Part shown: piece after piece, positions 1-64,000 of the stretch | How the letters are laid out: every line of letters begins with the position of its first letter | Numbering within the stretch: position 1 is the first letter of the stretch | NCBI GenBank assembly: GCA_002269645.1 | Contig: NIVC01000725.1 | Coordinates: forward strand, 1 to 64,000 | DNA from: Macrostomum lignano | Taxonomy: Eukaryota | Length of the DNA: 64,000 nucleotides | Reading direction: 5' to 3' | Translations under genes and position numbers: made by a program | Notes under the pieces: model-generated | What the model saw: the letters and a program-made list of their open reading frames with translations, nothing else | Told to the model about the DNA's origin: nothing | The model's database searches: none

Positions 1-5258
<5,258 letters not shown>

Positions 5259-9464: not shown

Positions 9465-10535
9465 GTATATCCATTGGAGTCAATGTACACTCAGGGAGGG
9501 AAGAAAGGAATGAGTTAAAGGAGGGCAGGGCCATGGACTTATTAAGTGGGGTTTATAATTGTATCCATTGGAGTCAATGTACACTGACTGCAGGGGAGGG
9601 AAAGAAAGAAAGAGCTAAATGAGGGCAGGGATGGACTTATTAAGTGGAGTTTATAATTGTATCCATTGGAATCAATGTACACAGCAGGGGAGGGAAGGAA
9701 AGAAAGAGCTAAATGAGGGCAGGGATGGACTTATTAAGTGGAGTTTATAATTGTATCCATTGGAATCAATGTACACAGCAGGGGAGGGAAGGAAAGAAAG
9801 AGCTAAATGAGGGCAGGGATGGACTTATTAAGTGGGGTTTATAATTGTATCGATTGGAGTCAATGTACACAGCAGGGGAGGGAAGGAAAGAAAGAGCTAA
9901 ATGAGGGCAGGGATGGACTTATTAAGTGGAGTTTATAATTGTATCCATTGGAATCAATGTACACAGCAGGGGAGGGAAGGAAAGAAAGAGCTAAATGAGG
10001 GCAGGGATGGACTTATTAAGTGGGGTTTATAATTGTATCGATTGGAGTCAATGTACACTGCAGGGGAGGGAAGGAAAGAAGGAGCTAAATGAGGGCAGGG
10101 ATGGACTTATTAAGTGGGGTTTATAATTGTATCGATTGGAGTCAATGTACACTGCAGGGAGGGAAGGAAAGAAGGAGCTAAATGAGGGCAGGGATGGACT
10201 TATTAAGTGGGGTTTATAATTGTATCGATTGGAGTCAATGTACACTGCAGGGGAGGGAAGGAAAGAAGGAGCTAAATGAGGGCAGGGATGGACTTATTAA
10301 GTGGGTTTTATAATTGTATCGATTGGAGTCAATATACACTGCAGGGGAGGGAAGGAAAGAAGGAGCTAAATGAGGGCAGGGATGGACTTATTAAGTGGGG
10401 TTTATAATTGTATCGATTGGAGTCAATGTACACTGCTGGGGAGGGAAGGAAAGAAAGAGCTAAATGAGGGCAGGGATGGACTTATTAAGTGGGGTTTATT
10501 GTATCGATTGGAGTCAATGTACACTGCTGGGCAAG
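9465..10535 (+). repeat. Minisatellite, 94-bp unit, ~11 copies
   Basis: Unit ATCCATTGGAATCAATGTACACAGCAGGGGAGGGAAGG...TTATTAAGTGGAGTTTATAATTGT repeated in tandem. Confidence 0.95.
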
Positions 10536-11384
10536 GAAGGAGAATTAAAGAACTAATGAGGCTGGTTAGTTAATAAAACTGAACTCGCTCGACAGAACAA
10601 TTAAAGCCAAAAGTGGATACAGATGGAAGAATTTTTTCAGGATTGATTTTGCTTTACGAGTATAGCATTAACTAGTTCTTTTATCTGCTTGCTGACAATA
10701 ATTTCTCCCAGAAACAAATTAGCTGAATTAGCTAGTGCAATAGCTCGCAAGTTTTCTGATTTGTTTACCGAAGAAGCGTCTGAGATACTTTTAAATTTGA
10801 CAAGACGAGCTCTGATGAACATTTAGTAACGAGTGCACTTCAAAATCAAATCACAATACGCTCGTAGAAATTATATTATAAATCTTTATTTTCTGTCCAT
10901 TTACGCGTCTTTAAGCTGCTGTAAGCTCGATCTTAATCTTTTTTGACGCATCTTTTAATCCTTCCTTTCGAGAAAAAATTCCACTGGTATAATTGCCACC
11001 TCTGGCAAGGATTATACTGTACGATTTCTTCACGGAGAGCAGAGGTTTATGGGATGACGCTTATTATTTTTCTTGCTCTAAAAAGATGAGTGCCTGCGCT
11101 TTGCGCTTGAAACACTAGGCCTCTAGACTACAGATCAAAACACTTTTGGGCAAGCGATCAAAAACCCATGCATGGGCTTAATTACGAGTTTAAAGGTCAC
11201 ATTTTGGCCTGCGATTAGGACAAAACATGAAAGCCTGTTTTGGACAAATTTCAGGACGAAGCCAGCTTTAATTTTATTAATTTTTCACAATTTAGTTTGT
11301 CATTATTAGTTGGGCGCAAACCTCTACGATTTTTAGGGGCCAAGATTCACTCATAAATTTACAATGTACATTGCTCTAGCTCCG

Positions 11385-17512: not shown

Positions 17513-17869
17513 TTCCTACTCAAAAAAGAATTCGCGTAAAAGTGCTGCGGTTAGAAATCCTACAATAGTTTAAGTATTTCACAGATTATTTTCAATTTTA
17601 ATGTTTTAAGACATCAGCATTGAGTTAGATTTTCCTTTTCTCAATTCACTCTTAGAAGAAGCTATGCAGTTCGTGAAGCCCACTCAACTTACTTCCGTTC
17701 TACTCGAGTAAGGCACTTGAAAAACGGAGCTTATATACGATATCGTTCAAGTGCTAGCAAACAGCCATGAAAATATTAGCTTTACAGTGAATGCTTACAT
17801 TGAAAGCCTGTTAAACTTTTAGAATGTGTTGACATACACGCAACAAGAAATTGTAGTCATCATCTACAT

Positions 17870-17990
17870 CTCCATTGGCTGACCAATGAAAACAGAACGC
17901 AGAATCTTATATTTAATGGCGGACAAGCAGTGACGAGCAGAAAATTGCAGCATATTTTGTAAATTAGTTTCAAATCTTATTTAAAAACAC
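17870..17990 (+). promoter_or_regulatory. Candidate promoter of the prohormone-like gene: paired CCAAT boxes, TGACG half-site, TATA-like TATTTAAA
   Basis: ATTGG-CTGA-CCAAT at ~17874-17887, GTGACG at ~17930 and TATTTAAAA at ~17979, upstream of ATG 18038. Motif match only. Confidence 0.3.
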
Positions 17991-18037
17991 CAAAACTAAT
18001 CAATTACTAAGAGGTCCAACGTTGTTAAAAGTAGGAA

Positions 18038-18672
18038 ATGATTTGGAAGACTAATTTTCTGGTCGCTTTGATCTGCATAGCTGCAGGTAAGTTAGTCTGT
18101 TTTGCGGCGATATATTTTGCTAATTAATTTAATACGCAATTTTTGCCTGCGAGACAATTGATAATCAAGCTTCTTTTCCAGGAATTGCAATTCTGCCTGG
18201 CAGCTTTGGAGCCCCGGAGGTCGAATGGAGCTCGAGCAAGTTCAGCAACGAAGGAGAGTTCAGGAATGACAAGCGAATCCTCAGGGATCCCATGATTGAC
18301 AAGAGAATCCTCAGGGATCCCATGATTGACAAGAGAATCCTCAGGGATCCCATGATTGACAAGAGAATCCTCAGGGATCCCATGATTGACAAGAGAATCC
18401 TCAGGGATCCCATGATTGACAAGAGAATCCTCAGGGATCCCATGATCGACAAGAGAATCCTCAGGGATCCCATGATTGACAAGAGAATCCTCAGGGATCC
18501 CATGATTGACAAGAGAATCCTCAGGGATCCCATGATTGACAAGAGAATCCTCAGGGATCCCATGATCGACAAGAGAATCCTCAGGGATCTCATGATCGAC
18601 AAGAGAATCCTCAGGGATCCCATGATTGACAAGAAGAGCTATACCACGGACAACCAGGAACGCAATGATTAA
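18038..18672 (+). CDS. Putative neuropeptide/peptide-hormone precursor, 179 aa. Exons 18038-18086 and 18182-18672; signal peptide + 12 x KR-ILRD(P/L)MID
   Basis: The spliced product is MIWKTNFLVALICIAAG-IAILPGSFGAPEVEWSSSKFSNEGEFRND(KR-ILRDPMID)x12-KK-SYTTDNQERND-stop. The 95-nt intron has a CAG|GTAAGT donor and a TTCTTTTCCAG acceptor with matching phase 1. The N-terminus is hydrophobic. Most repeat variants are synonymous in this frame (ATT/ATC, AGA/CGA); one is P>L. Confidence 0.85.
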
Positions 18673-20916
18673 AAGCCGCATGTAAGCAGCAACTGATGGA
18701 GCACCTGTCCAATGACTCATTCTAAGCGCGGTTAAGCAACAAACTACCCAATGTCCTACTATACGCTTTAGCTGACTAATATAATTACTTTGCAATAAGA
18801 CTAAAGGTACATCCGTACGAAAAAATACATATTGGCAAAGACAGAATTATTCAAGGGTCTTTGTTCTTATCAGAACAACAAGCAACTAAAACTATTGTTG
18901 TAGCTGGTTGGACGATTTTTTCGCCTTCTATAATCTATAGCTATGTAAGAAAATCTGCGCTCAGTTTCAAGAATGCTGTACATGGAGTTTTTTGTTGACA
19001 TCATTGGTAAAAAGATTGCTTGATTTAAGAAAAGAACCGCCAAATTAGGATTAATAATCCCTACTGCATGCTTTGTTATATAGCGTTTTTTCATTTTAAT
19101 TTTTTCATTTCATTAGTTAGATTAGAACGTATAGTACTTTCTTTGGGAAGTAGCCTCTGGGTCTGTCCGATCAAAGACGGATCAAGGAAGCGTTGGTGAA
19201 TTGGGACGGGAGGAGGGCGTCGGCGGTTCCAAAGTTGATCTCGCGAACGAGCTATTCGCGAAGTTGCCAAGTGATCAAACACTAGCTTGCTAAATTGGAA
19301 AAAATGGTGACAAAAATCGAAGGAAATGCGACAAGCAGGAACGTAAGACTGCAAGGGATCAATAGGTAGGACGCCTGAAGAAGTTTATGGCCGTTCATTT
19401 GTCGCTGCATGGAACAGGATCGTTCGGTTGTGAATGTCTATTAAATAACGCACGGTTTAATCTTCAAAGACAGGTAAGGTTGTGCCATGGACTACTAAAA
19501 GCTACCGACGTAAAATACACAATCATGTTATAATAAATTGATAAACTATATTCGTAGACTTCCAAGACGCGAAGGCCGCAAAGTCAACCCAAAAACGGTC
19601 TACTCTCCCGACAAAAACGGTACCTAGGCCAAGAAGTGTCCCAGAGACGTTGCAGGTAAATAGGAAAGAAGCGACTCTAAAACGACTCCGAACGCTTCTA
19701 TAACAAGTCATTTTAGTGACTCTGGGGGTGTAGATTCGTATCTGAGGCGCGCCAGTCGCTGTAGAATCACTGAGTTGCGTCTGAAGCGCATCTGCGTCAC
19801 TTCATGAATAAGAATCGCATTTCGCATTTATAAACACTGTTTGTTTAGTCTACTTGAGTTAGTAGAAAGTTAAGCGCTAACACGACTTTTGGACGTAATG
19901 TGTTCAGGATCCAAAATTTGCCTCTCCATCGCATTACAGTCGTTTGAGTCGGTAAAAAGTCACAAGAGTCGATGCTAGAGTCGCCTGTGAGTATATCGAT
20001 TGATCAAATTATGAAATTTATTAACAGCCGAGTCGGAAAAATTTAATTTTGATCATTTTTTTACTTTGATGTAATTGTAGGCTTGCTAGTCTGTTAGTAG
20101 AGTTATCTCAGTCGTAGCTAAGGAACAGATGGGCGAGTCAAAGAGGACCTTCTCACAAAATTTGGCTTGACTTTGGTCTGGTACAACAGATGATTTCGAT
20201 TATCACTGTTTCATCTTGAAGCAAAATAAATTCTCCACTGCAATTTACTGATGGCTTTCGATTGCAGACAAAATGTCTACAAAGACAATCCGTCCTAGCT
20301 ACAGATTTATTTACTACTCGTATGTTATATATTACTTAATAAGTTGTTACCATATTCTAAGAAAAACGCAAGCTAATAGAACATAAAACGCATGAAATAG
20401 ATTAAAATAATATACAAAACGCAATGCAAAGTGCAACAAATTTACTTTCTATACTACTGATAAGTAGCCAGTCACAGACATGCACTTGATGCTACATAGA
20501 AAAAATGTTATCAGGAGAAATTCAGTTGAAATCAGTCACAAGAGTCACAAGAAGATGAAGCACTTCGATATATTAATTTTTTCTACTTCTGCATGCGTGT
20601 TAGCTGTAGCATACTTTACTTTACGTTTAACTATTAAGCATTTTATTCTAAAAAGTGGCACATTTTACACTGCACCTTCTACTTCTTATCAGCACTCAAC
20701 GCAGTAGTCAAGACTCAAAAGTCCAATATATAATTAAGGCACTTGTTGTTTTTCGACACGGAAATAGCAGACCTTAATCTAACAAAAAGTTACAAATCAA
20801 AGTTATTAAAGAAATAACATAAGCATCGAGAAATTGGCAGATTCTAGTTACTAAGGCATTAATATTTATTTCTGTTGTCTTAGTCTCCTATTACATGCAA
20901 TGGGTCGCCATTACAA

Positions 20917-22780: not shown

Positions 22781-22983
22781 CAAGCAGGTAGGCACTATAA
22801 CAGGACCAGACAGGTTCCCAAATACAGGCAAACTGACACTAAGAATGAATGATAAAAAAGACCCGCAGACAGCACAACAAATACAAGAAGACAAGCGCCA
22901 AGACACAGAGACAAGCAGACACTGTTGGACCCACACAGGCGAAACGAAATTAAATGTAACCAGACGTTTCTAGATTCCTAGAT

Positions 22984-25721
22984 TCACCGAGCTTTCTTAG
23001 AACTAGAACCCTGCGAAACGCCCTCAGGACTGGCGCTGGACGCTCCGCCGCCAAGACCGTAGCTGGATGACTTGCGGATTTCAGTGACGCCAATGAGCTT
23101 TCTGGCACCGTAGGACATGAAAACCAATAGCAGGACAAATAGACAGCAGTTCAGCTTAGACTGGACAATGTAAGGCAATACGAAGACTGCAAACACTAGG
23201 ATGGACCAGGCCAACCAGATCAGATAGGCGGTGATGTCTTTGTTACGGCGAGCCAAATGCATATCGGTGGCCGCTTGGTCTGGGAACTGGCCGTGCTTGA
23301 AGTAGTAATCCAGGGCGTCGTCCTGAAGTATCACAAATTTAATTATTCATAGAGAGTTAGGTAACTGGCGGTGAACATCAAAGCTTGAATTTGAATACCT
23401 GGGTTAGGGGAATGGCGGCAATTGACTTTGAATACCTAGGGTGGAGGAATGGCGGTAATTGACTTTGAATACCTGGGGTGGAGGAATGGCGGTAATTGAC
23501 TTTGAATACCTGGGGTGGAGGAATGGCGGTAATTAGCTTTGAATACCTGGGGTGGAGGAATGGCGGTAATTAGCTTTGAATACCTGGGGTGGAGGAATGG
23601 CGGTAATTAGCTTTGAATACCTGGGGTGGAGGAATGGCAGTAATTAGCTTTGAATACCTGGGGTGGAGGAATGGCGGTAATTAGCTTTGAATACCTGGGG
23701 TGGAGGAATGGCAGTAATTAGCTTTGAACACCTGGGGTGGGGGGCATGGCAGTAATTAGCTTTGAATACCTGGGGTGGGGCATGGCAGCAATTAGCTTTG
23801 AACACCTGGGGTGGAGGAATGGCGGTAATTAGCTTTGAATACCTGGGGTGGAGGAATGGCGGTAATTAGCTTTGAATACCTGGGGTGGGGGCATGGCAGC
23901 AATTAGCTTTGAACACCTGGGGTGGAGGAATGGCGGTAATTGACTTTGAATACCTGGGGTGGAGGAATGGCGGTAATTAGCTTTGAATACCTGGGTGGGG
24001 GGAATGGCGGTAATTAGCTTTGAATACCTAGGGTGGGGCATGGGGGCAGTTAGTTTTTTATATAAGAAAAAACTGCCTACTAGGCCTAGGGGAGTCTCTT
24101 CACAACACTGAAATTTTCTAGAGGGATTCTAATTGGGGATTGATACCGGGATGAAGAGATCTCTAATTATGGACCAATGTTAGATTAAGTGATTTCTAAT
24201 CAGGAGACTTTTTACTGACCTTTTTCTTATAGAGATCGAACAGCCATTTCGAGCACTCCGCGTCGTCGCTGGGCACATCGTCCAGGGGGATTCGCTCGCA
24301 AAGGAAGTCAGCCCGACAGGGACGGCCATTCAAGGCAGCCATCATAGTTGGATCCTCGCCTGCTGGCACGGCCAGGGTCATATCGTAGATGCAGGAGGCG
24401 CGGCCTTTCAGAGACTGCAACAGCAGAATGAAGCCGCGAGTGCGCGGCAGCAGAAGGTGCCGCATTGGAGAGAGGCCTTTGGCGGCGGCGACTTCGTTGC
24501 ATGCGGCCAGTTTGGCCTCGGTGAACCTGGTGCCCTCGGGGAAGAACAGCACGCTGACCGGGTGCTCCTTCGGGTAGGAGATCATCTCCTTGGAGTGGTA
24601 CTCCAGTACTCGACGGTCGTGATCGAGGTTTCTAGATAGGAACATGCACTCGGTGAAGTAGAAGGACCAGCCGATGATGGGGATGAACTTTAGCACCTTC
24701 TTGCCCACCATCTTGGAGCTCTGCGGGGGAAAAAGGGGAGATCAAATTCAAGTAATTTTTGAGTTGTTTGGGGTTGCCTGTCGAGCTGGCCAGCAACAGA
24801 AATTTATGAGGCTGGCTCAGCAACTGGGGATCTGGGAGGCTGGCCCAGCAACTGACACTCTGGGAGGCTGGCTCAGCAACTGGGGATCTGGGAGGCTGGC
24901 CCAGCAACTGACACTCTGGGAGGCTGGCCCAGCAACTGAGAATCTGAAAGGCTGGCCCAGCAACTGGGGATCTGGGAGGCTGGCCCAGCAACTGAGGATC
25001 TGGGAGGCTGGCTCAGCAACTGAGGATCTGGGAGGCTGGCCCAGCAACTGAGGATCTGAAAGGCTGGCCCAGCAACTGAGGATCTGGGAGGCTGGCTCAG
25101 CAACTGAGGATCTGGGAGGCTGGCCCAGCAACTGAGAATCTGAAAGGCTGGCCCAGCAACTGAGGATCTGGGAGGCTGGCCCAGCAACTGAGAATCTGAA
25201 AGGCTGGCCCAGCAACTGAGGATCTGGGAGGCTGGCTCAGCAACTGAGGATCTGGGAGGCTGGCCCAGCAACTGAGAATCTGAAAGGCTGGCCCAGCAAC
25301 TGAGGATCTGGGAGGCTGGCCCAGCAACTGGAATTAGAAAGTTTTGGCCACACGCACCAGCACCCAGTTCGCTCACCCCAAGCATTCCCAGGCGTTCAAC
25401 AGCGCACCAGCCGAGCATCCAGTCCGTCTCGTAGCGATGATTCATAATCACAATACTGTGCTCGGTGCCCAGGTGAGGCACCTGCTCAGGCCGCACAAAC
25501 ATACGAATTTTACTGTTAGCATACCATTGCGACAGCATAGTAAACTGGCACCAGATTTGGAAGGCCAGCCATGAATTGAGCTTTCTATAAAGCCAGCGAC
25601 TAAATGGCCAAACTAGCAGAGTGAGCAGTTGAAGAAAATTCACAGTCAGGCCAATAACTAGAAAGCCCCAGATCAACAGGATGTGAACTGGGGGTAGGCG
25701 CTTCCACCAACTGCCGGGCAT
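22984..25721 (-). CDS. AGPAT3: 1-acylglycerol-3-phosphate O-acyltransferase, AGPAT3/4 type, ~394 aa. Exons 25377-25721, 24220-24720, 22984-23322
   Basis: Contains the acyltransferase motif NHRYETD (NHX4D), LG-SSKMVGKKVLKFIPIIGWSFYFTECMFLSR, FFPEGTRF and HLLLPRTRGF, plus a C-terminal dilysine ER motif KKAR. All junctions are GT-AG, phase 0. AGPAT3 and AGPAT4 cannot be distinguished by eye. Confidence 0.93.
23385..24050 (+). repeat. Intronic minisatellite, 37-bp unit GAATGGCGGTAATTAGCTTTGAATACCTGGGGTGGAG, ~18 copies
   Basis: Seen directly, in AGPAT intron 2. Confidence 0.95.
24805..25330 (+). repeat. Intronic minisatellite, 28-bp unit GCTGGCCCAGCAACTGAGGATCTGGGAG, ~19 copies
   Basis: Seen directly, in AGPAT intron 1. 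Confidence 0.95.
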
Positions 25722-29701: not shown

Positions 29702-31131
29702 AAATTACTGTAAGCACCCGGATTATAGTGTCTCTTAAAGTTCTTTACCCCGGCAGGCAACAGCACTTTAAAACTTATTGACCTCAACTCTTCGTCATAA
29801 ATGTAACTCCGTATACATGTATACATCTGGCTCAAAGAAATTTCTGGTCCGTGCATTTATACGTTAAATATACGATAGTACGTACGGTGGCAGCTTCACT
29901 AGTTTAACGTCGACGTTAAATCCTCATGGTCTGATCTGTTGTCTGAAGATCGTGCGAACATATATATGTACATGTACATGAAGTAAACCTAAACGACAAA
30001 ACCTACAGACCGCGATCGCCAACGATTTTCTATCCCCCCCCCTGATATTTAAAGGACCCCGTGGCAGACTGAGAGAGTTGTAGTTGTATCTACTGAATAT
30101 ATAAATGTTTGAACGCAAAGAATTGTGCTGGAGATTTAGGACTGGAGTGCGTGAATTCGAATTCTGCACTTAATATCATGTATATGCACGCTGATCAAAT
30201 CCCCCTGCAGACCCAATTCCATTGATTCTTTATCTGAAAAACTGTTTAAACAGTAATTACTGTTAACAAATTGAGAAGCTAAAGAAATCAGCAAAATAAG
30301 TACACATATGCGTGTAACATATAATTATATAGAAGTTAGAAGTTAGAACATGTCTCGCAAATTGTACTAGCGTATATATCACTTTATTCTCTGGTGCCAA
30401 AACCACTTGTGCTAAAATTGTGAAGCTAAAGGCCTTAGTGTCAATTTTTTCGTGATTGTCGGGAGTTTCAGGATGTTTCCTCATTTGTCAGGCGTGTCAG
30501 GATGTTTCAGGAGTGTCAAGAGGGTCAGAAATACCATCACTATCATACAGGAGCGTCAGGAGTGTCACCTTTAGGAGTATTGGCGGCTCTTGCAAAGTTC
30601 TTCAAAGCAGCAATAAGAAAATCAAAACTTTTAAGTTTGAAAGAAGAAGTCTTAGCGCCGGGGCTGTTGCCCCCAGGACCCCGGGTCCTGCACGTAATGG
30701 CGTGGTGAACTATCTGTGCAGTATGAGACTGGTATGGCCTTTATCCCAGCCAGCGATGCTCACACCTGCCTCCCCTGGCGGGCTGATAGCTCAAGAGACT
30801 CTGTCTCCTGATTTTCACCTTGCAAGGCGCACTTCGAAGGGTACTCGTCCCGTGGGTGTTAAGGCAGGCCCCCTTGGGCCCTGCCGAGCTGATTCGTTGG
30901 CGCCGGGTCCTGGTGTGACCATAAACGCACCCTCTAATGTCCCAGTGTAACTCCGTGCTGATGGACGCTTGGCCAGGGAGTAGTCTGGTCGCTAACGGTT
31001 CCCCTTGCGCTTTTGGGTCCCCCGCAGGGTGGTATTTTGCTTTTTGGGGGCCTGCCGCTTGGTTTGGGGTTGCGGCCTTGCGGCTCTTTGCCTGTGTTCT
31101 GCAGGAAGTCCCACCTTTTTACTTCCAGCCA

Positions 31132-32651
31132 ATGGCTTCTAACCGAAGTAACAAACCGGCTGTGGATGACACAGTGCCTCCGGCCTCGGCTGGGGCCGTG
31201 GACTCCTCGGCCATACCACCTGCTACCATCGGGGACGCCTCGGCGAGACCCGTGGAGCCAACTCTGAGCGGTGCCTCCGAGAAGACACCTGCTACTCCAG
31301 CTGCTAAGAAACGCAGCACCACCTCTGGAGCTGCCCGCCGTCGACTTAACAAGGCGAGGCGGGCCAAGGAGGGCGGAAGCCAAACCGGTGCCAGGGGCCA
31401 ACGGCCCGCGGCAGCGGAAGCTTCCCAGTCTGGGGCGGTGGCGGAAGAGGGCCTCGAGCCCACGGAAGCCCCTGCCCAGGATAGGGAGGCCGATGCAGCC
31501 GGGAGGGTGGACAGCCCACCTGAAGAAAGCTCCACTGACCCCCGGGCCTCCTACGCTGATGCGGCAAAGAGGCAACCGGCGGTTGTCATCCTGGGAAAGG
31601 ACGCGCGCCTGTCTCCCGATCAGCTGAAGCAGGTGAGAAGTGCCGTTGATGGCCTCCTGTGGAAGCAAACTCTGAAGGGCACGCCTCTGAACATTCATTC
31701 GAATGCGACGAGGGACTCGTGCCTTCTCATTTGGCCCAGTGATGCTGACTCGGGTCGGCGGCTCCTTGAGCTGCTGCCCGAGCAGAGCTGGGACCTCAAC
31801 CTAGCCTTCTGCAGAGAGGACGAGCGCCCCCGGACCAAGAGGCATCGAATCTGGGTCCCGGCCAGGAGCGTTGTTACCTCTGCTGACGAGCTCCGGAAAG
31901 GACTGCTAGCAGTCAACCGGGAGCTTCCCGCCGCGGGCCTAGTGGTGCATGACACCCTTAAGCGCACCGACGGCACTGGCTTCACAGCCATCCTGGGGCT
32001 GTCGGACGCCTGGATGAGGCGTTATCCACACGGCAGCTTCATCAACGTCGGCCTTTGGAAGCTGCGCATCCGCTCCTACGAGGCCGACCCTCCCCGTGGC
32101 AGTGAGCAGGGCGGGCGGGATGCGGAGGCGGCCGGGGCCGAGGCGCAAGCCTCTGCTCAGACTGCCAAAGCAAACCGCCCTGCCCGGCAGCACGGCCGCG
32201 CGGGCAAAGCTGAGCGCGCTGCTGAGGGCGGAGGCGACCGACGCCCGGCGCGTAGCACCAAGCGGCGCGGCCTGTACCAGCGTGCAGCTGAGGCAGTCCG
32301 TACCGCCAAAATCTCCCAGCTGAGGCGAGAGGTCGCCGGGACGCCTAGGCGCACCAGTTCGTCCAGGGAGGGTGGGGACGTCCCAGCTGGGCCCAACCCC
32401 TCGGGGCAGGGCCGACTGGAGACGGACCCGCCTGCCCAGGCGGCTGGCTGCTCCAGGGCATTGGGCCAATCTGAGGCGGAGGACCCCATGGATGGTGGGC
32501 AAAGGGCGGCGAACGCTGCCTACTGCCTTCCGGCCAATCGGGGCCTTTTGCTGAAGAAGAGCCCATGGACACCGGCGACCCCGACCCGAAGCCGGTGAGC
32601 GCCGAGGAGGAGGAGGAACTCCTGGCGGCTGCAACATCCGATCTGCAATGA
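31132..32651 (+). CDS. LINE ORF1 (gag-like nucleic-acid-binding protein), with a probable -1 frameshift near 32490-32547
   Basis: Called ORF 30937-32598; likely start MASNRSNK at 31132. It contains SYADAAK..VVI..LSPDQ..V and RIWVP, as recalled for LOA-type ORF1 (DUF4780-like). The -1 frame continues FAEEEPMDT...EEEEELLAAATSDLQ to a stop at 32649-32651. Confidence 0.72.
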
Positions 32652-35600
32652 TGCCAACGACTACCTGGTGTCTGCAGATCAACACCCAGCACTGCGTGGC
32701 GGCGTCGGTCAACCTGATGCGCACGGCAGAGCAACAGCTTCCGGGCCTGGTCTTCGTACAGGAGCCCTGGATGACTAAAGGTAAGCCAAATAATGTGCCA
32801 TCTGGCTACCACTGTTTTTGCATGGCGGGCTCTCAGCCTCGCCCAAGATCTCTGGTCTTTGCTGCAAAAGCTTTTGAGGCATGGATGAGACCTGATCTCT
32901 CGACTGGGGACATCTGTGTTGTTCAAATCAATAACCTCATTCCCAATAAACCTGTGCTGGTAGCTTCTGCCTATTTCCCGGGCGATGCCCCAGTTGTCTG
33001 CGACGCGTTAGTCAACCTTACTGACTATGCTGCGTCCCATCGGTTCGAGCTGCTCATTGCAGGGGATGTGAACGCACACCACCTGCATTGGGGCAGCAAG
33101 AACATCAATAGCAGAGGCGAGGAGCTGCTGGCCTATGTCAGCAGCACTAACCTCAACTTCTGTAACGTGGGCAATGCACCAACGTTCAATAATGGGCGGT
33201 GGGCCGAAGTCATCGACACCACCATCGCCTCACCCGGACTGCTTTCCGCAGTTACGGGCTGGCGAGTGTGGGACGAGGACTCGCTCTCGGACCACCGCTT
33301 TATCCGCTTTTGCATTGGGCCGACCAAGCAAAAGCCTAAGGTCACTTGGAGTCGGAACGTCAGAAACACCGATTGGGCCGCCTTTGGCTCGAAGCTGAGC
33401 CGCGGCCTTCGGGATCTTGACCCCCCAGTGACCTCTCTGACTGCCAGGTGGTGGACGATCTCGCCTCCTCCCTGGGCGGGGCGATCACCACTGCCTTTGA
33501 AGCAGCCTGCCCCCTAAAGGCCTATAAAGGCAAGAAATCTGCTCCCTGGTGGAACCCAGAGCTCGGGGCCCTTCGGCGCCGAGCCAGGACCCTCCAAAGG
33601 CGAGCGCTCAAAACCAAAGACCCATCTGACAGAGAGGCCTATACCCGTGCGATCCACGAGTTTAAGGGCCAAGTCAGAAGGGCCAAGACGGCCAAGTGGC
33701 GCCAATATTGCGAAGGGCTTGAGGGCTCTCGCCCCGTAGCCCGCGTGGTTAAGGCACTCACTAATGACCGTTTTTCTAAACTCTCTGTTGTGAAGAGACC
33801 TGACGGCTCGGTCACAGAGAGTTCGGAAGAGACTCTAGAGCTCATGCTCAACAGTTTTTTCCCTAAATCTCCGACTCAGCAGGGCCCGCCCGACCACACA
33901 GTGGGAGGGCAAGGCCTAGCAAAGTCTATGATCACCAAAGACCGCATTATTAGAGCGGCAAGGTCCTTTAACCCGTTCAAGGCGCCTGGGCCCGACGGCA
34001 TCTACCCAGCGTTCTTGCACGAGGCGGTGAAAAACCACCGCTTCCTGGACCTGCTCTGTCGTCTCCTTCGAGCTTGTATGGAGCTGGGCTATGTACCAGT
34101 TGCATGGAGAGAGGCCCGGGTGGTCTTTATCCCCAAGCCTGGAAAGAGCGACTACCAATCGGTGAAGGCCTTCAGGCCTATCAGCCTCACTTCTTTCTGC
34201 CTCAAGCTCCTCGAGAGACTGGTGCTTTGGCGCCTACTTTCGGTCGAGCTGAAGCGCTTCCCACTCTCGCAGAACCAGCACGCCTTCCGCGCGGGCAGGT
34301 CAACCGAGAGTGCTCTCCATGTCATTGTTGACTTCCTGGAGAGGGCCGTTCTTGGCAGCGGCTTTGCCCTCTCGCTTTTCCTGGACATTGAGGGGGCCTT
34401 CGACAACGTCATCTTCGAGGCCTTTTGCAGAGCCCTGGAATCCAGGGCCACGCACCCTCACCTTGTCCGGTGGATCATGTTCATGATCCGAAACCGCACT
34501 GTTGTGGCCCACCTGAGCGGCAGCTCTCTTTCGGTGCCTGTCCTGAAAGGGGGCCCCCAGGGCGGCGTTCTCACCCCCGTTCTCTGGAACATGGTCATGG
34601 ATGAGTTGCTTTGCAGTGATCTCCACGACCCCATTCTCAAGGTGGGCTATGCCGATGATGTGACCGCGATATGCGCGGGCCCCTCGGTTGATACCATCAG
34701 AGACCTTCTGCAGGGCTTTCTGGGACGAGCGGAGCGTTGGGCAGACCAATGTGGCCTTAGACTCTCAGAGTCGAAAACCACAGCAGTCATGTTTACCAAC
34801 AAACTGCTCTGGACCATTAAGCCCCTCACCCTCTATGGAAAGAATATTTCCATGGAGAAGCAGGTCCGCTGCCTGGGCCTCACTCTGGACCACAGGCTTA
34901 ACTGGACTCCGCACATTCAAACTAAAGCCAAAAAAGCCCTGGCTGTACTGGCTCAGATCAGGCGCGCCGTGGGCACCACCTGGGGGCTCACCCCCAGGAA
35001 GCTGTGGTGGATTTACACTGCCATCATCCGCCCCTCGATCAGTTACGCCAGCCTCGTGTGGGCTAGCGGCCTGAGCGTCAAGAGCAACCTCGACGCTCTC
35101 TACAAAATCCAGGGCAGAGCCTGCCGCATGACTATGGGCGCTCCACCCTCTACTCCTTTTGAAGGCATGAATGCCTTCCTCTGCGCCCCTCCTTTGGATA
35201 TTTATATCAAAGGAGAGGCGGCGAAGAGCACCCGGCGTCTTCTGGATGCTGGGGTGGCCTTCAAGAAAGTGCGGGCCTTTAAGAAGCGGTCGCTTATCCC
35301 GCACTCTGACCTCTGCCTCAAGGCTCTCGAGGAGTGTGGCGGGCTCAACATCCTCACGGACTCGATCCCAGCCACCCTTCTCCTGAGCCAAAGGTATAAG
35401 GTCACCATTCAGCCTCGACACGAGGCGAGTGACAGCTGGAGCGACTCTGAAGTCCACTGTTACACTGACGGCTCTATGAGGCATGGTCTTTCAGGCTTCG
35501 GAGCTTGCGTCTTCTTCAAGGGAGAAGTGGTGTGGAGCTACTCCCAGCACACTGGGCTCAACTCCAGTGTTTTTCAGAGCGAGGTGCTTGCCATCAGCTC

Positions 35601-36351
35601 CTGCGCGGCAGAGCTGCGCCGAAGGCAGCTTAGCGGCCGGAAATTTATTTTTCACTCTGACAGCCAAGCAGCCCTTCGGGCCCTCTGCCGCAGCACCGCC
35701 AGCTCCAGGTCCGTCCTGGACTGCAACACCCAGCTCAACGGGCTTGCGCTAGGCAACCAGGTGGAGCTCAGATGGATCCCGGGCCACGCCGGCTTCCTCG
35801 GCAACGAGCGCGCTGACCTGCTGGCCAAGGCTGGCTCCGCCGGCGCGCTATTGGGGCCGGGCCCGGGTGCCCCCATCCCCGCCTCGGTGATCAATTCCCG
35901 CGTTAAGCGCTGGGCTGACTCCGAGCATCTCCGCAGGTGGCACGACACCCGGAATTGTAGGCAATCCCGTGCTGCCGTCCCCTGTCCCTCTCCTCTCCTG
36001 CGTAGAGCCCTCCTCAGGCTCAACCGCAGAGACCTCAGAGCAGTTAGCATGGCCCTCTCCGGGCATGGCTGCTTCTCTCGCCACCGCTTCCTTCAGGGCC
36101 AAGTACCCGAGGAGCGGTGCCCCTTCTGCCGCTCAGGCAGTGAAAACGCCGAGCATTTTATCTGCCACTGCCCGGTTTTCACCAGGGCCAGGCTTACTCA
36201 CCTCGGGCCAAACCCGGTTCTCTCCGACGTTTGCAGGCCCGAGAGCATCCCACTGCTCGCCCGGTACCTCAGGGACACCGGACGAGCTGATTTCTTCCCC
36301 ACCGTCGGTGAGGAGGACCGCGCTGCAGGCGAGACCGACGGGTCCCCCTGA
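32648..36351 (+). CDS. LINE ORF2 (AP endonuclease + reverse transcriptase + RNase H + Cys/His motif), split by a -1 frameshift near 33445
   Basis: APE motifs: LQINTQH, VQEPW, GDVNAHH..WGS, PTF, IDTT, SDH. RT motifs: KAPGPDG, FRPISLTSF..K.LERL, FLDIEGAFDN, GGPQGGVLTP.LW, GYADD. RNase H motifs: YTDGS, FQSEV.AI, SDSQAAL, WIPGH.G..GNERAD. C-terminal CPFC..ENAEHFICHC. Confidence 0.95.
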
Positions 36352-36842: not shown

Positions 36843-39800
36843 TCAGAGCTGCTCCTCTTCAGCGAATGGCCACTCCAGAGGATTATCAGATTGGTACACC
36901 GTTCGCCTGACAGCTCGGCAGAACTGGCGCTTGCTCAGGGCCATCTCCTCCGCCGCCTGTTGCAGCTCCTTTTGCCGCCGTTGCTGCTGTGTAGTGGCGG
37001 TGGTGCCGTCGGAAGCGGCGGAGGCGGGCTGTTGAAGATCCACCCGGCTAAGTCTAATGAGTCGTAGCTGGATCAGATGTAGTCCGATGCGGATGTTGTG
37101 CAAGTCCGAGCTCACCTTGCTCTCTGCGTACATGTAGTTGTTGTAAATTTTTTAAGTTAGGAGAAATACATGTACATTTAGTAACTCATCGAACATCGGG
37201 CTCTTCTCTCATTGGCTAACAGGGGTAGGGGAAATAATGACTCATCGAACATCGGGCTCCTCTCTCATTGGCTAATAGGGGTAGGGGAAATAATGACTCA
37301 TCGAACATCGGGCTCCTCTCTCATTGGCTAACAGGGGTAGGAGAAATAATGACTCTTCGAACATAGGGCCCTTCTCTCATTGGCTAACAGAGGTAGGGGA
37401 AATAATGAGTAATGACTCATCGAACATCGGGCTCTTCCCTCATTGGCTAACAGGGGTAGGAGAAATAATGACTCTTCGAACATAGGGCCCTTCTCTCATT
37501 GGCTAACGGGCGTGGGCCAGTTAGTAGGGATTAGAGAAAAAGTGAACCATTGAACGCTAGGTGTTCTCTTATTGGCTGTAAACTATAAACTGACCTTGGT
37601 GACTGTGAATGTAGTCCAGCCTAGACTTGAGTCTCGGATTGGCGATGTTCAGCACCGTTGCCAGCCATCGCAGCAGCCGCACAGTCGGTGAGCACAAAAT
37701 CGACTTCAGCAGTCCCGGCGTTGCTTCGTCAGCGACATCGCCAAAATCATTGACATCTCGACTTCGACGCTTCGCCGATTCCTCGGCGTAGCACTGAATG
37801 ACGAGGGCGCTAAGAAACCGTACGACAAGAAGGCCAATTGCCGTCACAAAAACCGCCAATAGCAGGATCGCCAACGGCCAGCGGTTAAGATCGCGCCAAT
37901 GAGCGTGCTTTGCCTCGCCTGAGGGTACATTTTTGAAATGAAAACGAATGACTTATCCAGCGATACTTATCGCTGATTGGCTGTCACAAATAGAAGAAAA
38001 CGAATGACTTATGCAGCCATGCTTCTCTCTGATTGGCTGACACAGATAGAAGAGAATGAATGATTCATCCAGCAATGCTTATCGCTGATTGGCTGACACA
38101 AATAGAAGAAAATGAATGACTTATGCAGCCATGCTTCTCTCTGATTGGCTGACACAAATAGAAGAGAATGAATGATTCATCCAGCAATGCTTATCGCTGA
38201 TTGGCTCACGCAGATAGAAGAGAATGAATGATTCATCTAGCAATGTTTATCTCTGATTGGCTGACACATAAAAGAAAATAAGAAATGTCTTTTAGTGAGG
38301 CTCATATAGTGATTGGATACAGCTAAATATGGTTGTAGAATCAACAGTATGATCGGGTACTTTAGCAGCTCTGCAGTAGTTTAACAATTTCGTATACTTG
38401 TTGCTAATTAGCAGCTTAGCATGCTTAAATACTGTTGCAGATACTACAGCTCAGACTTACGAAGTGTAGTAACAATCAGGCTCTGCATCAGCGTTGCGAA
38501 ATTGTACCAACGTTCATGTCCAAACTCAGAGGCCAGGGCAGCCAGCAGGTACAGACAGGTGGCGAGGCACAGCAGGCAGAGGGCCGCAGCCAGCCCAGCA
38601 AGTTTGCCAACAACTCTTCCAACCACTGAGTAGAATTTGGCCAGCCTCTGATGCAGCAGCATTGCTTCCAGCAGTTGCAGAGTGCAAAGAAATGCTTGAA
38701 TGGCTAGTAGGCTGCTGAAGGCCTGAAGGAAGGATAAATTATCTATGAAATGAAATATTTGCAAAAGGGCTCTGGGCAACCTGGCGCAACGACTTCTGCG
38801 ACATCGTCCCACAACATCAGCGTTGATGACAGTTCTGCACATTCCGCTGACTCGGAGGCACGCGCTCACACAGGGTGTACAGCGGCCCTGACTTTCTAAT
38901 CGTCAGGCATGTACACTCACTGTGTCTTGGGGGCTGGCCCTCATAGCTGTGAATTGCATGACAACCGCACGACAACAAAATCATGGTCTCTTTACCAGAA
39001 GCTGTGGCGTTCTTCTGGAGAATTACTATACTGGATTCTGGCAAGCGAGCGAAAATTCCACTAAAGTTACCGGCACTTCCTACCTATTTAATGGATATTT
39101 CTTCATGTAAAAAAACTCAGTTGATGCAAATGCATTCTAAAAAACAACCAGATTTTATAGAACACGCACCAACTATTTTCCTTTGGCTCTATAGCCTTCT
39201 GTAGCTATTTTTTATTAGTGGCAGAAGAGGGACACAACTGGCAAGAGACAATATTCCCCATTCTGTTACGCAGCCATACGCACAAGCACACACACACACA
39301 CACAGGAGTGTACAGCGGCATTTATCGTTAGGCATGTACACTTCACGGTGTTAATTGCACGAGCAGAGTCAAGCCGGGATTCCCAATTTAGCTCCAACTT
39401 AATGTGACTGCACTTGGAATCCGCTGGGACATCAGAGCGACGTGCTGGACCACACCCAGGGTCGGCCCTCATGGCTGCTCAAACAGCAAAACAAACCCTT
39501 ACTGACCTCGCCAAACTCCGCCGTCGCCTTGACCGCGGCGAAGGCCTCCGCCGCCTGTCCCGCTGCCAGACGTCGCCTCGCGTCCAGCTCGCCGCTGCAG
39601 CGCAGCGTCAGCGCTACTCCGGACGCCAGGATGGCGCCGAAACACGTGGCCCGATGCCAAAGCCACCCGGCGCCAATCCGACCGTACAAATCGCTGAAGC
39701 GACGCGTTACCATGACAACAACAATGATGAGCGCGGCGCCCAGTAGCAGGCTGGCCAGTTCGAGAGTGAGAGCCGCCGCTGATCTGCCATCGCCCGGATA

Positions 39801-40584
39801 GTCCCTCACCGGGTGCAGCCACAGCCGCAGCCGGGACTGCCCGGTCGTCCCGGCAACCGGCAGCCGCAGCTGCATCTGGCAGGCTGCCAGCAGGCCGCAG
39901 CCAGTCTGGTAGAGCACAAACTCAACCGACAGACTGCGGGTCCTTAACAACGGAGCCCAGTTGGCCGATTCCAATGCGTCAATAGTTGCCATGGCTACCG
40001 TTGCATTGTGGCCTAATGATTGAATCTCCTTTTCTAAGTTTGCCGACAGAGTGCCGTCGGCGCTGCCTGGCGCCAGGCAAACGGCGCCAGGCGGATCTTG
40101 CAGAGCCTGCGGCAGTCCTGAAGGACACGGCGTGCCAGACGAGGGACTCAGCGCCAGGCTGATTGCCGGTTGTCCCGCTATGCGCAAGGCAACTCGTGAC
40201 TCGGGCGCGTAGAAGAGTCCCGGCACAAGGCGCGCGCGCGCCCAGCGCCAAAAACCGGCCACAGTCGAGTTGTAAGGTGCCGCGCCCGGTTCGAACAGTC
40301 GGTGGAGATGCCGGCGCAGCAGCAGCTGCTCGACGCCCCGGCGATCGGCGCAAGCGGCGGTCAGAACCAGCGCCAGATGCGCAACAGTTGTCAGAAACAG
40401 CGCCAAACGACGTTTCGCCGCTCGGCGCAGAGTCTGGCGCCGCTGCCAACTGCCGTAGCCGCTGGCCGCCGGTTCTGTCTCGTCTTTAATTAGTTGCCAT
40501 GGCAACCTGGCTAGGATGGCTGTTTGAAAGCGACAACGCCAGCTGTTGCTGTTCGACATCGGGGCAGTTGCTATGGCGACAGTT
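36843..40584 (-). CDS. PKD1-like polycystin, channel/TOP domain and C-terminus (5' part unresolved). Exons 39503-40584, 38461-38742, 37595-37918, 36843-37123
   Basis: Polycystin-channel motifs FWRWARARLVPGLF, LG..A...I..LE..NW....TRSLSVEFVLY, AFSSLLAIQAFLCTLQLL and an S6-like ILLLAVFVTAIGLLVVRFLSALVIQCYAE. The four exons join through GT-AG with consistent phase 1. Confidence 0.8.
37178..37505 (+). repeat. Intronic minisatellite, ~56-bp unit containing ATGACTCAT and CTCATTGGCT, ~6 copies
   Basis: Seen directly. Confidence 0.9.
37945..38270 (+). repeat. Intronic minisatellite, ~58-bp unit containing CTGATTGGCTGACAC, ~5-6 copies
   Basis: Seen directly. The unit is related to the 37.2 kb unit. 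Confidence 0.88.
38865..39365 (+). repeat. Two diverged copies of a ~90-bp dispersed repeat (CACAG..GTGTACAGCGG...TCGT.AGGCATGTACAC) at ~38865-38965 and ~39290-39365
   Basis: Visible local similarity. The second copy is preceded by (CA)n. Confidence 0.5.
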
Positions 40585-40611
40585 CTGAAAAATGTTTTCG
40601 GAGTTTCGGAA

Positions 40612-41250
40612 TTCACTGAGGTGTTTTGAAATTCACTGAGGTATTTTGGAATTCACTGAGGTGTTTTGAAATTCACTGAGGTGTTTTGGAATTCACTGAG
40701 GTATTTTGAAATTCACTGAGGTATTTTGGAATTCACTGAGGTGTTTTGGAATTCACTGAGGTGTTTTTGGAATTCACTGAGGTATTTTGGAATTCACTGA
40801 GGTGTTTTGGAATTCACTGAGGTGTTTTGAAATTCACTGAGGTATTTTGGAATTCACTGAGGTATTTTGGAATTCACTGAGGTGTTTTGGAATTCACTGA
40901 GGTGGTTTGAAATTCACTGAGGTGTTTTGGAATTCACTGAGGTGTTTTGGAATTCACTGAGGTGTTTTGAAATTCAATGAGGTGTTTTGGAATTCAATGA
41001 GGTGTTTTGGAATTCACTGAGGTGTTTTGGAATTCAATGAGGTGTTTTGGAATTCACTGAGGTGTTTTGGAATTCACTGAGGTGTTCTTGGAATTCACTG
41101 AGGTGTTTTGGAATTCACTGAGGTGTTCTTGGAATTCACTGAGGGTGTTTTGGAATTCACTGAGGTGTTCTTGGAATTCACTGAGGTGTTTGGAATTCAC
41201 TGAGGTAATTTGAAGTTCACTGAGGTAATCAAAAATTCACTGGGGTGATT
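40612..41250 (+). repeat. Minisatellite, 20-bp unit GGAATTCACTGAGGTGTTTT, ~31 copies
   Basis: Seen directly. Confidence 0.96.
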
Positions 41251-48700: not shown

Positions 48701-50508
48701 CTCATCGTGTCTGATCTATTCTCATCGTGTCTGATCTATTCTCATCGTGTCTTATCTCTTCTCATCGTGTCTTATCTCACGTCATCCCATTGTGTCTCAT
48801 CTCATCTAATCTCATCGCATCTCATCCTAATCGTGTCTCATCTCACCCATACTACATAATCTCGCCTATCATGTTTTGTATCATCGCGGAATTCAAACAT
48901 GCTCGCTCTATAGTCTCGCTTTTTAACTCGCTTTTGTTTGTTTTTATGAGTGTTTTTAATACTTATAATTTTTTTCTAAATGGTTTGTTTAACCCGCAGA
49001 CAACAAGTTCATCAACGCCAACGTCAGGTCCCAGCATAACAACCGCACTCGAGCCAATTCAACAGGTGAGAAACCGAGACTGGAGAATTACTTTCTAGTT
49101 TCCATGCGTTATACCTGCAACATCGTGTATCTATCTATCTCATCCTATCGCTAAAGTCATGCCTACCATCTTGGCGCTAAATTGGCGCTGAAGTCATACC
49201 TGCCATTTTGACGCTAAATTGGCGCTGAAGTCATACCTGCCATTTTGGCGCTAAATTGGCGCTGAAGTCATTCCTGCCATTTCGGCGCTAACATCCTCTT
49301 TTTAGTGACTGGGAACTGGGACTCTTTTGCCCTACCTTGGGGACAAAGCTTTTTTCCGAGGCACCTGCTTATTGCTATTGATTTTTCCTATGGAAACAAG
49401 CGCGCGTTGAACTCGACGAAATTTTCGCATTTCAGGCCCAGACACTCCGGCTGTCTCTCTGAAGCCGCCATCGATAAAGGTAAGAAAAAATTTGAAGTAG
49501 CATTTGCTATCGTCATATTTAAGTTTAACAAAAAACTGGGCCGTTTTTGAACAAGGGGCCACAGGGGTCATACAGCAACTACGATCCAATTTTATAATGA
49601 ATTGAACTAAACTACGAGTATAAACCTTGTTTAAATCTGTTTAAATTTGTTAAAATCTGTTTAAATCATGAATTTTTTTCATGAACTCCGTCGAGACCAG
49701 CCGATTGGGCATTTCTTAGAAACTCGCAGGGTTTTAAATTGAGGCTGAAGTTCCAGTTTTTTTTTGGTTTCTTGGCTCGCCACTCAACGCCCCAGAAGTT
49801 TTTTTCTTTTTTTTCAATTAAGAAATTTCCCTACAAAATAAGAAGAAACGGCAAATCGAAGAGTGTCGAGCACGAGCATAATGCAACTAGAAAGAAATTG
49901 TTGCGCTTTTCAAGCTACTTGAGCGCACTGCGGTGCAGGAAATTCTGTACCTGGGAAACGGTTTCAGCTACACCTTGTGGCGCTGCAGAGGTAACCTTAT
50001 TAAGGAGAAATTGCTACTTAAAGGTAGAATTTGCGCAGGAGAAGTGAAGTCTGCTTTTCGGTATAAAATAATATTTAATTGGCCGGATTTTTGTATGAAT
50101 GTAGCTCTCTGCAGGCTAGAGGGGGCTGATCCTATTGAACCTGTCTGCAACCTGTTTGCTTCCAAGGCGCAGCAGAGGCGGATGCACAGCTCTTCGCCGT
50201 TGCTTGAAGAGCAACAAACCGGAACTGCGCCAGATGAGGAAGTCAGCGAGCCGGAAGTGCAGCAGCCTGGAACACCGTCTGCTTCTTCAACGATATCCTC
50301 CACTGTTGCGGCCAATCGGCCGCTTAGCAACGGGAAGCTGAGCGCTTCATCGCGCTGCTCTAATAGAGAATTTAGCGATGCTGTCGCCCAGGCGGAGCAG
50401 TCCTTTGACCGGCTGACCGACCAGATCTCTGCGGAGTTGGCTTCGTCTGCCAGCCTCAATGGCAGCTGCGGCGGCAGACAGGAGTTGATGAAGCCGACAA
50501 CTGGCTGA
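45730..50508 (+). CDS. DCX: Doublecortin/DCLK-family microtubule-associated protein with two DCX domains and no kinase, ~378 aa. Exons 45730-46317, 46978-47074, 49000-49065, 49436-49479, ~50167-50508
   Basis: DCX1: VRFYRNGD..RTFEALLDDLTR..LPQGVRY..GGSYVCAS. DCX2: PRRPARVLLNSRTAKSFDRVMADISQA..AVRRLYRLD-VTCLEDFF...VFVAYGNEK. Junctions are GT-AG and phases match (0,1,1,0). The last acceptor could be 50167 or 50173. Confidence 0.9.
46318..46803 (+). repeat. Intronic minisatellite, 15-16-bp unit CCTTTGGAGTGAAAC, ~31 copies, starting at the splice donor
   Basis: Seen directly. Confidence 0.95.
47122..47412 (+). repeat. Intronic minisatellite, 29-bp unit GGATTGCTAATCTAGCCAATGATTAGAGT, ~10 copies
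   Basis: Seen directly. Confidence 0.95.
48040..48850 (+). repeat. Intronic minisatellite, 20-bp unit CTCATCTCTTCTCATCGTGT, ~38 copies
   Basis: Seen directly. Explains the SHL/SSC-repeat ORFs. Confidence 0.96.
49165..49290 (+). repeat. Short array, 37-bp unit TGCCATTTTGGCGCTAAATTGGCGCTGAAGTCATACC, ~3.5 copies
   Basis: Seen directly. Confidence 0.85.

Positions 50509-59710: not shown

Positions 59711-64000
<4,290 letters not shown>

Follow-up and report, generated by a model that had tools for sequence, protein, structure and literature searches.

Metazoan multicopy precursors cleaved by the convertases PC1/3 and PC2 include those of proenkephalin, FMRFamide/FLP, orcokinin and the achatin-type peptides (GFxD), and the orcokinin, achatin and enkephalin peptides are unamidated. 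In flatworms, lineage-specific multicopy precursors are a well-known kind of gene (Collins 2010, PMC2953531). Smed-SPP-15 of Schmidtea mediterranea comprises a signal peptide of 25 amino acids (aa), a 21-aa spacer ending in D-KR, and KR-separated peptides, eight FDPIQF(G) together with FDPIMF(G), which were confirmed by mass spectrometry (MS) (PMC2953531). Here we analyzed a stretch of 64,000 nucleotides (nt) of Macrostomum lignano DNA (assembly GCA_002269645.1, contig NIVC01000725.1, positions 1 to 64,000), referred to below as the window, and a gene within it at 18038-18672 on the + strand. The gene is annotated in GenBank as BOX15_Mlig009070, and its full product of 179 aa carries 12 tandem octapeptides between dibasic sites. 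In sequence, the product shows all the hallmarks of a convertase-processed multicopy prohormone. It is plausibly a lineage-restricted multicopy secretory-peptide prohormone, already annotated but mis-modelled, for which a neuronal function may be hypothesized.

Reading of positions 17700-19000 and translation confirmed the two-exon gene base for base. A preliminary description of this DNA had proposed an ATG at 18038, a 49-nt first exon, a 95-nt intron and a product of 179 aa, and this model agreed with our translation and with the start, junction and stop of the GenBank coding sequence (CDS). The parts of the gene are as follows.

18038..18086, + strand: exon 1, 49 nt; 16 1/3 codons from the ATG (MIWKTNFLVALICIAA and the first base of G17), ending CAG|GTAAGT
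18087..18181, + strand: intron, 95 nt, phase 1; GTAAGT...TTTTCCAG, with polypyrimidine tract and acceptor TTCTTTTCCAG
18182-18672, + strand: exon 2, in phase with exon 1
18182..18210, + strand: start of exon 2 with the rest of the predicted signal peptide (G17-IAILPGSFG, residues 17-26)
18211..18270, + strand: acidic spacer peptide of 20 aa, APEVEWSSSKFSNEGEFRND, followed by the first KR at 18271-18276
18277..18636, + strand: octapeptide array, 12 exact 30-bp units, each with an octapeptide and a dibasic site
18637..18672, + strand: C-terminal tail of 11 aa (SYTTDNQERND) and TAA stop at 18670-18672, which matches the stop of the GenBank CDS

The spliced CDS has 540 nt and translates into the 179 aa in the order MIWKTNFLVALICIAAGIAILPGSFG / APEVEWSSSKFSNEGEFRND / KR / 12 octapeptides / SYTTDNQERND. 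Exon 1, whose start is the start of the GenBank CDS, encodes the n-region and the larger part of the h-region of the predicted signal peptide. The frame of exon 2 is closed upstream by an in-frame stop within the intron (18130-18132), and it has no start codon ahead of the Met in the first repeat. A signal peptide, and with it a secreted product, therefore needs the splice.

An N-terminal signal peptide was predicted by heuristics, namely Kyte-Doolittle hydropathy and the (-3,-1) rule. The n-region of the leader has K4, and its h-region (F7-L21) is 15 residues long with a mean Kyte-Doolittle value of 3.05. This hydrophobicity was equalled by 1 of the 473 ATG-initiated open 26-codon leaders in the window (top 0.2%). 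The predicted signal-peptidase site SFG|AP lies after G26 (c-region PGSFG|AP) and conforms to the (-3,-1) rule. A scan of both strands of the 64 kb gave a single CAGGTAAGT, which coincides exactly with the donor of exon 1. We suggest that the weight lies in the combination of these features, i.e., the hydrophobic leader, the unique CAGGTAAGT donor and the in-phase acceptor. The gene might instead be a functionless young open reading frame (ORF) that arose when a 30-bp minisatellite grew within a lineage-specific transcript; its leader and KR pairs would then be incidental, and there would be no selection for a bioactive peptide. We consider this unlikely, as it would require a top-0.2% ATG leader, the sole perfect CAGGTAAGT donor in the window and an in-phase acceptor to coincide.

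The array consists of 11 copies of ILRDPMID and one of ILRDLMID (unit 11, 18577-18606). KR precedes every octapeptide and follows 11 of them, while KK follows the last, so that all the short repeats are bounded by dibasic sites. Tandem Repeats Finder (TRF) reported a period of 30, 12.3 copies, 97% matches and 0% indels, in line with the 30-bp unit without indels given in the preliminary description, and the unit occurred 12 times in the window versus 0 times in shuffled sequences. The array also has the properties of a minisatellite: 30-bp head-to-tail units, high similarity, and a copy number of 10, 11 or 12 across loci. It is a minisatellite and a coding sequence at once. Three of the six frames are open across it. 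This openness is therefore no evidence for coding, and several open frames were likewise seen in other arrays of the window whose period is a multiple of three. These facts favour the functionless young ORF, since the window is saturated with minisatellites and arrays of such periods are usually open in several frames, as this one is in 3/6. That reading is opposed by the dibasic site present in every unit and by a layout that is the same as in the verified prohormone SPP-15.

The unit variants in the window are a recurrent ATT/ATC change and one CGA/AGA change, both synonymous, versus P->L and R->K. The earlier claim that the variants are mostly synonymous thus holds for ATT/ATC and CGA/AGA, but the events are very few and P->L and R->K speak against it. 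The recurrent ATT/ATC change is silent also in one minus-strand frame. Every unit ends in MID-KR, and since no Gly stands before the basic site, as had been noted before, the peptides are expected to be unamidated. The C-terminal Gly that serves as amide donor in amidated flatworm neuropeptides (FLP/NPF/xxRFamide and similar) is thus absent. For ILRDPMID, standard residue masses give an [M+H]+ of about 972.52; the average mass is 972.16 and the net charge about -1.

The layout is closest to that of SPP-15 and its schistosome counterpart Sma/Sja-NPP-26, in which a signal peptide and a single spacer are likewise followed by tandem copies separated by KR. The likeness to SPP-15 extends to a signal peptide of ~25 aa, a spacer of ~20 aa ending in D-KR, 8-12 KR-separated tandem copies, and a precursor of 125-180 aa. 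In contrast to SPP-15, the M. lignano peptides have no Gly for amidation, and no similarity was seen beyond the KR sites. NPP-26 shares unamidated 7-8-mers (xxFDPILF, e.g., SYFDPILF), a 10-residue period, and D-P-[I/M]-[L/I] in the same register. Pairwise BLASTP against NPP-26 gave E = 3e-5, a value inflated by repetition. The BLOSUM62 score of ILRDPMID against SYFDPILF was 7, with P of about 0.01-0.03 as a single comparison, which is not significant against hundreds of catalogued peptides. The aromatics that define the NPP-26/SPP-15 family (F before DP and a C-terminal F/Y) are R and D here. The F-D-P-I-x-[F/Y] core is therefore missing, and only D-P and two aliphatic residues are common to both. 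By analogy, the gene may work like SPP-15 and NPP-26 without being a member of their family.

Other known precursors are less similar. The planarins (Smed-SPP-6/-7/-8/-9/-17) are lineage-expanded prohormones of flatworms, and their MS-verified KR|LIDPMTFG... shares L-x-D-P-M with (I)LRDPMI(D). They differ in encoding two distinct 13-14-residue peptides and not a tandem array, and the motif covers 4/6 residues in a shifted register; the in-register octapeptide score for planarin was not above permutation. With multicopy precursors in general the gene has in common a signal peptide, identical tandem KR-bounded peptides and acidic spacers. It differs from them in that no sequence relationship and no Pfam match above the cut-off was found and in being restricted to one species in the searches.

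Processing enzymes and cleavage contexts of the required kind are documented for this lineage. Cleavages at KR|I, KR|L and D-KR| were verified by MS in Schmidtea, and the non-amidated octapeptide ending in Asp of SPP-5, cut between KR sites (KR.NDLFRLLD.KR), was MS-verified along with SPP-6 (PMC2953531). A PC2 homologue of M. lignano (RNA815_2403.2) has a nervous-system pattern in in situ hybridization and a lethal phenotype in RNA interference (RNAi) (PMC4490696). These data bear on another possibility, that the product is a secreted but uncleaved repetitive protein, e.g., a disordered polyampholyte of mucus, eggshell or adhesive, in which KR are merely charged residues. A predicted signal peptide, a low-complexity charged repeat and an AlphaFold2 model that predicts disorder would all suit such a protein, and cleavage is predicted here from sequence. 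We nevertheless regard it as very unlikely. Flatworm convertases demonstrably cut the same contexts, the protein has just 179 aa, each unit contains a consensus KR site and no other content, and the Cys, Gly/Pro-rich or glycosylation-type composition typical of structural secretions is absent.

The GenBank annotation provided evidence for expression. The CDS of BOX15_Mlig009070 ("hypothetical protein") spans exactly 18038-18672 and has the same exon 1/exon 2 junction; the GenBank sequence around this locus is identical to 8038-28672 of the window. Its deposited proteins PAA77719.1 and PAA79507.1 (BOX15_Mlig009070g1/g2; P0163 in our searches) have 99 aa, and a cluster mate, PAA84435.1 (BOX15_Mlig021643g1; P0015), has 89 aa; all are named "hypothetical protein" in assembly GCA_002269645.1. 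P0015 starts MIGKTNFLVALICIAAG|IAILPGS... and thus carries the predicted exon 1/exon 2 junction, which is present in all three transcript-derived annotated proteins. The Mlig_3_7 annotation was built only from stranded RNA sequencing (RNA-seq; StringTie, TACO) and a mapped de novo transcriptome (Wudarski et al. 2017, PMC5730564). Low-expression and antisense filtering were applied, and ORFs were called by TransDecoder (PMC5730564). The annotated junction is therefore RNA evidence, indirect in that it comes through the annotation, for a spliced + strand mRNA. Start, junction and stop of this frame are supported in this way at three loci. The preliminary description would have lost its basis if no spliced transcript joined 18086 to 18182 or if transcription came from the minus strand only. 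Both doubts are answered, because the annotation rests solely on stranded RNA-seq and transcript assemblies and places the spliced transcript on the + strand. The survival of the transcript through an expression-filtered annotation at three loci, for which it must be abundant enough, also speaks against a functionless young ORF.

The strand of the transcript is equally relevant to the minus-strand ORF across the array (18124-18795; 198 aa from its first ATG, MSHWTGAPSVAAYMRLLIIAFLVVRGIALLV-(NHGIPEDSLV)n). This ORF is open in three loci and has a hydrophobic N-terminal stretch of its own (MRLLIIAFLVVRGIALLV). That it represents the true product is hardly credible. The annotated transcripts are on the + strand and come from stranded libraries with antisense filtering, and the 95-nt intron is GT-AG on the + strand only. 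In addition, the recurrent T/C variant of the unit exchanges N and D in the minus-strand ORF but is silent in the + frame, and one genomic copy of the gene (L001, see below) places a Lys in the hydrophobic stretch. The antisense ORF is almost certainly a repeat artefact, and it is a trap for ORF-based callers.

The gene had been described as hidden, which proved incorrect: GenBank lists it at three loci as a hypothetical protein, though with its repeats collapsed (99 vs 179 aa). The models of the three copies in GenBank/UniProt have 89-99 aa, compared with genomic ORFs of 159, 169 and 179 aa. The following stretch accounts for the difference at the locus in the window.

18260..18499, + strand: stretch skipped in the deposited CDS, 240 nt, 8 units, boundaries TC...TC

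Deleting exactly 18260-18499 from the spliced CDS yielded the 99-aa PAA77719.1/PAA79507.1, and this was the sole solution found. The boundaries are TC...TC and not GT-AG, indicating that the stretch is not a real intron. With 8 repeats lost to this non-canonical gap of 240 nt, the deposited product has 99 aa; at the second locus, a gap of 210 nt is required to obtain the 89-aa model. The wrong models, with a gap of 7-8 units, have the features expected of short-read transcripts whose repeats were collapsed before alignment to a long-read genome. The error is systematic and probably extends to other secreted proteins of this annotation that are encoded by repeats.

Three genomic copies of the gene were compared: the one in the window (L002), L001 (gene at 10001-10575 of its own locus) and L003 (gene at 10001-10605). 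Two of them are annotated as BOX15_Mlig009070 and the third as BOX15_Mlig021643. The loci contain 10, 11 or 12 repeat units, giving the products of 159, 169 and 179 aa. All three copies sit 4.3-4.7 kb upstream of an opposite-strand AGPAT-like acyltransferase gene. They are allelic or homeologous, in a genome that is partly duplicated (PMC5730564). L002 and L003 diverge by 0-0.5%. For L001, the flanks differ by 1.3-3.9% and the non-repeat CDS at 2/183 nt; within the 500 bp upstream of the gene, 9/500 differences were counted against L001 and 0/500 against L003. The spacer APEVEWSSSKFSNEGEFRND is identical in the three copies. None of the 33 units has lost the frame, an internal KR site or the terminal KK; at this divergence, the observation carries no statistical weight.

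Several findings weigh against a functional prohormone. A word-indexed search with the full 179-aa protein found no homologue among 5.8 billion protein clusters. An exhaustive phmmer search with exon 2 against 1.84 billion representatives gave 758 matches at E <= 0.001; among the best 150 of these 758, only P0015 of M. lignano looks like a true relative, and no orthologue outside the species was seen. Mlig009070 and Mlig021643 were not found in the literature text or the M. lignano supplements searched, which gave no expression-site, peptidomic or functional data for them. The two changes in the 183 nt of non-repeat CDS are both non-synonymous (W3G, and Y->F in the tail of L001), and amino-acid-changing unit variants, L->R in L001 and P->L in L002/L003, occur beside the silent ATT/ATC. 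No signal of conservation or selection was detected among the paralogues, which at 0-2% divergence have no power to show constraint. The units are 97-100% identical, in a genome full of minisatellites (45 TRF rows in 64 kb), and this identity implies either a very young or a homogenised array. The signal peptide is a heuristic prediction. Being acidic and unmodified, the peptide differs from most flatworm neuropeptides. Lastly, vertebrate data of Rholam et al. from 1995 reportedly show that Ile at P1' is disfavoured for dibasic cleavage. This worry is reduced because planarian peptides were MS-confirmed at KR|I and KR|L, as was the unamidated KR.NDLFRLLD.KR. Four of the other points serve the functionless young ORF directly, namely the near-identity of the units, the copy number that varies between loci, the lack of a homologue outside the species in the searches, and the non-synonymous nature of both non-repeat CDS differences between copies. 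If the gene is a mere transcribed young ORF, it is ordinary.

The collections searched for relatives yielded only the M. lignano copies, and they apparently do not include other Macrostomum genomes or transcriptomes. Other phmmer matches that were inspected, such as a crayfish "hemagglutinin-like" protein, fish hypothetical proteins and environmental ORFs, were rejected as repeat-against-repeat matches. The best-looking non-trivial match among those listed was P0111 (Tara Oceans MERC ERR1712130_690379), with KR-YLRDDTIE repeats and an octapeptide score of 18. Its family resembles the M. lignano product in 10-residue KR repeats with x-L-R-D-x-x-I-[D/E]. The 179-aa product lacks the conserved Cys-containing domain that defines this family at the C-terminus (ACRDWWFVIAPACFFIEG.GHDP.SSYPCCG), and P0111 was rejected as a relative on this ground. 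We judge the resemblance to be convergent or due to chance. P0111, P0165, P0166, P0170 and P0171 are small secreted proteins of marine metatranscriptomes and metagenomes that have this Cys domain. In this family a propeptide-like repeat, KR-Y[VL]RDDxxE, is present in one to many copies.

The preliminary description had not recognized ILRDPMID as a named family, and this stands within the scopes searched, as no match was found above the cut-off of Pfam, in the literature or proteins from outside M. lignano. Pfam gave nothing above the cut-off for the product and only sub-threshold, repeat-driven matches, and Rfam and tRNA scans of the window gave nothing. The literature search returned no mention of ILRDPMID; the neuropeptide precursor (npp) catalogues of McVeigh 2009 and Koziol 2016 were outside its scope, and an earlier npp name is possible. 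The strings LRDP, ILRD, RDPM and DPMI were absent from the text and supplements of Collins 2010 (PMC2953531). An AlphaFold2 model showed no fold, with a predicted local distance difference test (pLDDT) score of 38.5 throughout, which would fit a precursor. This is weak evidence because the single-sequence mode used often performs poorly.

We hold it to be somewhat probable that this is a Macrostomum-restricted prohormone-type gene whose peptides are secreted as an intercellular signal. Beyond the observed gene structure, the RNA support for splice and + strand, and the sequence hallmarks, the steps of processing, secretion, cell type and bioactivity would be the following. The spliced + strand mRNA would be translated into the 179-aa preproprotein, and the N-terminal leader would direct it into the endoplasmic reticulum and be cut after G26. 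A PC2/PC1-type convertase in the regulated secretory pathway would then cut after each KR and the final KK, and a carboxypeptidase E-like enzyme would trim the basic residues. Up to 11 ILRDPMID and one ILRDLMID would be released unamidated, together with the 20-aa acidic spacer and the 11-aa tail. Once secreted, most likely by neurons or by peptidergic secretory cells of another kind, the peptides would act as a signal between cells. With a coding minisatellite of 10, 11 or 12 copies in near-identical loci, peptide dosage may vary.

The same convertase-processed precursor could also come from a non-neural gland (prostate/seminal fluid, pharyngeal, epidermal or adhesive-associated) and act outside the body, e.g., as an allohormone or pheromone or with a role in mating or defence. 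The two readings have the same sequence evidence behind them. Peptides with reproductive or external functions are typically species-restricted and change rapidly in copy number, and both features are found here. Planarian prohormones are also found in the pharynx, intestine, marginal adhesive glands and sub-epidermal cells (PMC2953531), and M. lignano has numerous prostate transcripts that are short, secreted and lineage-specific (PMC5977470). We regard a gland origin as rather unlikely. With its net negative charge, the peptide does not look like a classical cationic antimicrobial peptide. Neither the gene nor the peptide appears in the supplementary text searched for a seminal-fluid screen; this text is small (~27,000 characters), which makes it weak evidence.

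Within the favoured reading of a secreted intercellular signal, a more specific proposal can be made tentatively, and it may well prove wrong. ILRDPMID could be a bioactive peptide found only in Macrostomum, serving as a neuropeptide or as a mating or water-borne signal through an unknown receptor, and its gene could be evolving as a coding minisatellite, so that the peptide dose (10-12 copies) varies between homeologous loci. If so, this peptide-signalling gene would be very young, possibly de novo in origin, and would belong to a flatworm model open to transgenesis. If the peptide is made and active, an orphan ligand would be added to the flatworm peptide repertoire, and the gene would illustrate clearly how a live minisatellite can form the coding region for a peptide hormone. 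The source cells, the dependence on PC2 and the receptor are directly testable, because RNAi, in situ hybridization and transgenesis are routine in M. lignano.

Two groups of candidate regulatory elements flank the gene, both recognized from sequence only.

17874..17916, + strand: promoter-like elements, ATTGG at 17874, CCAAT at 17883 and TATA-like TATATTTAA at 17908; 120-165 nt 5' of the ATG
18778..18799, + strand: candidate variant poly(A) signals, AATATA at 18778 and AATAAG at 18794

The elements at 17874..17916 may act as a promoter. A second TATTTAA lies at 17978. No canonical AATAAA was found within 330 nt of the stop. Just 5' of the gene, at 17874-17888, ATTGGCT/AGCCAAT forms an inverted pair, which is either regulatory or a common repeat seed. 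ATTGGCT/AGCCAAT (CCAAT-box-like) motifs recur inside two 56-bp minisatellites of the window (37184-37507 and 37940-38279).

The remainder of the window contains gene fragments, further genes and many repeats. CCDC81 HU domains are encoded at 3697-4317 (-), a 394-aa ORF with a sub-threshold Polycystin_dom match lies at 39432-40616 (-), and a C2H2 zinc-finger exon lies at 63545-63910 (-); none of these has an evident functional link to the peptide gene. The AGPAT-like acyltransferase gene at 22950-25721 (-) encodes 402 aa in GenBank. Its first intron holds a 28-bp minisatellite (24808-25330), and the ORF of its exon 1 reads straight into the array, indicating that arrays here easily mimic coding sequence. 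A non-long-terminal-repeat retrotransposon (long interspersed nuclear element, LINE) with long open frames occupies 30937-36351 (+). It comprises a 553-aa ORF1, an apurinic/apyrimidinic (AP) endonuclease ORF (32648-33517) and a reverse transcriptase and RNase H ORF (33448-36351), and the two parts of ORF2 overlap in different frames. By eye, the LINE is much more GC-rich than its surroundings.

The minisatellite density of the window is extreme, with 45 TRF rows of 12-168 bp period, i.e., one per ~1-2 kb. Microsatellites of (TCTG)n, (GACA)n and (AGAC)n, 150-470 bp long, are also present. A doublecortin-domain gene lies at 45730-46356 (+) and 49933-50508 (+). P0001, a doublecortin entry of M. 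lignano in UniProt, is 100% identical over 147 residues and then leaves the continuous ORF; its C-terminal part matches 49933-50508. A 15-bp minisatellite (46320-46802) begins at the end of the doublecortin ORF at 45730-46356. A 35-bp unit (ATGGATTGCTAGTCTAGCCTATGAGCGAGGGAATA) is repeated 222 times in an array of 7.8 kb at 50526-58297. The unit of a shorter array at 47124-47417, 29 bp long (AGTGGATTGCTAATCTAGCCAATGATTAG), is visibly related to it, and the 35-bp and 29-bp arrays flank or interrupt the doublecortin-domain gene.

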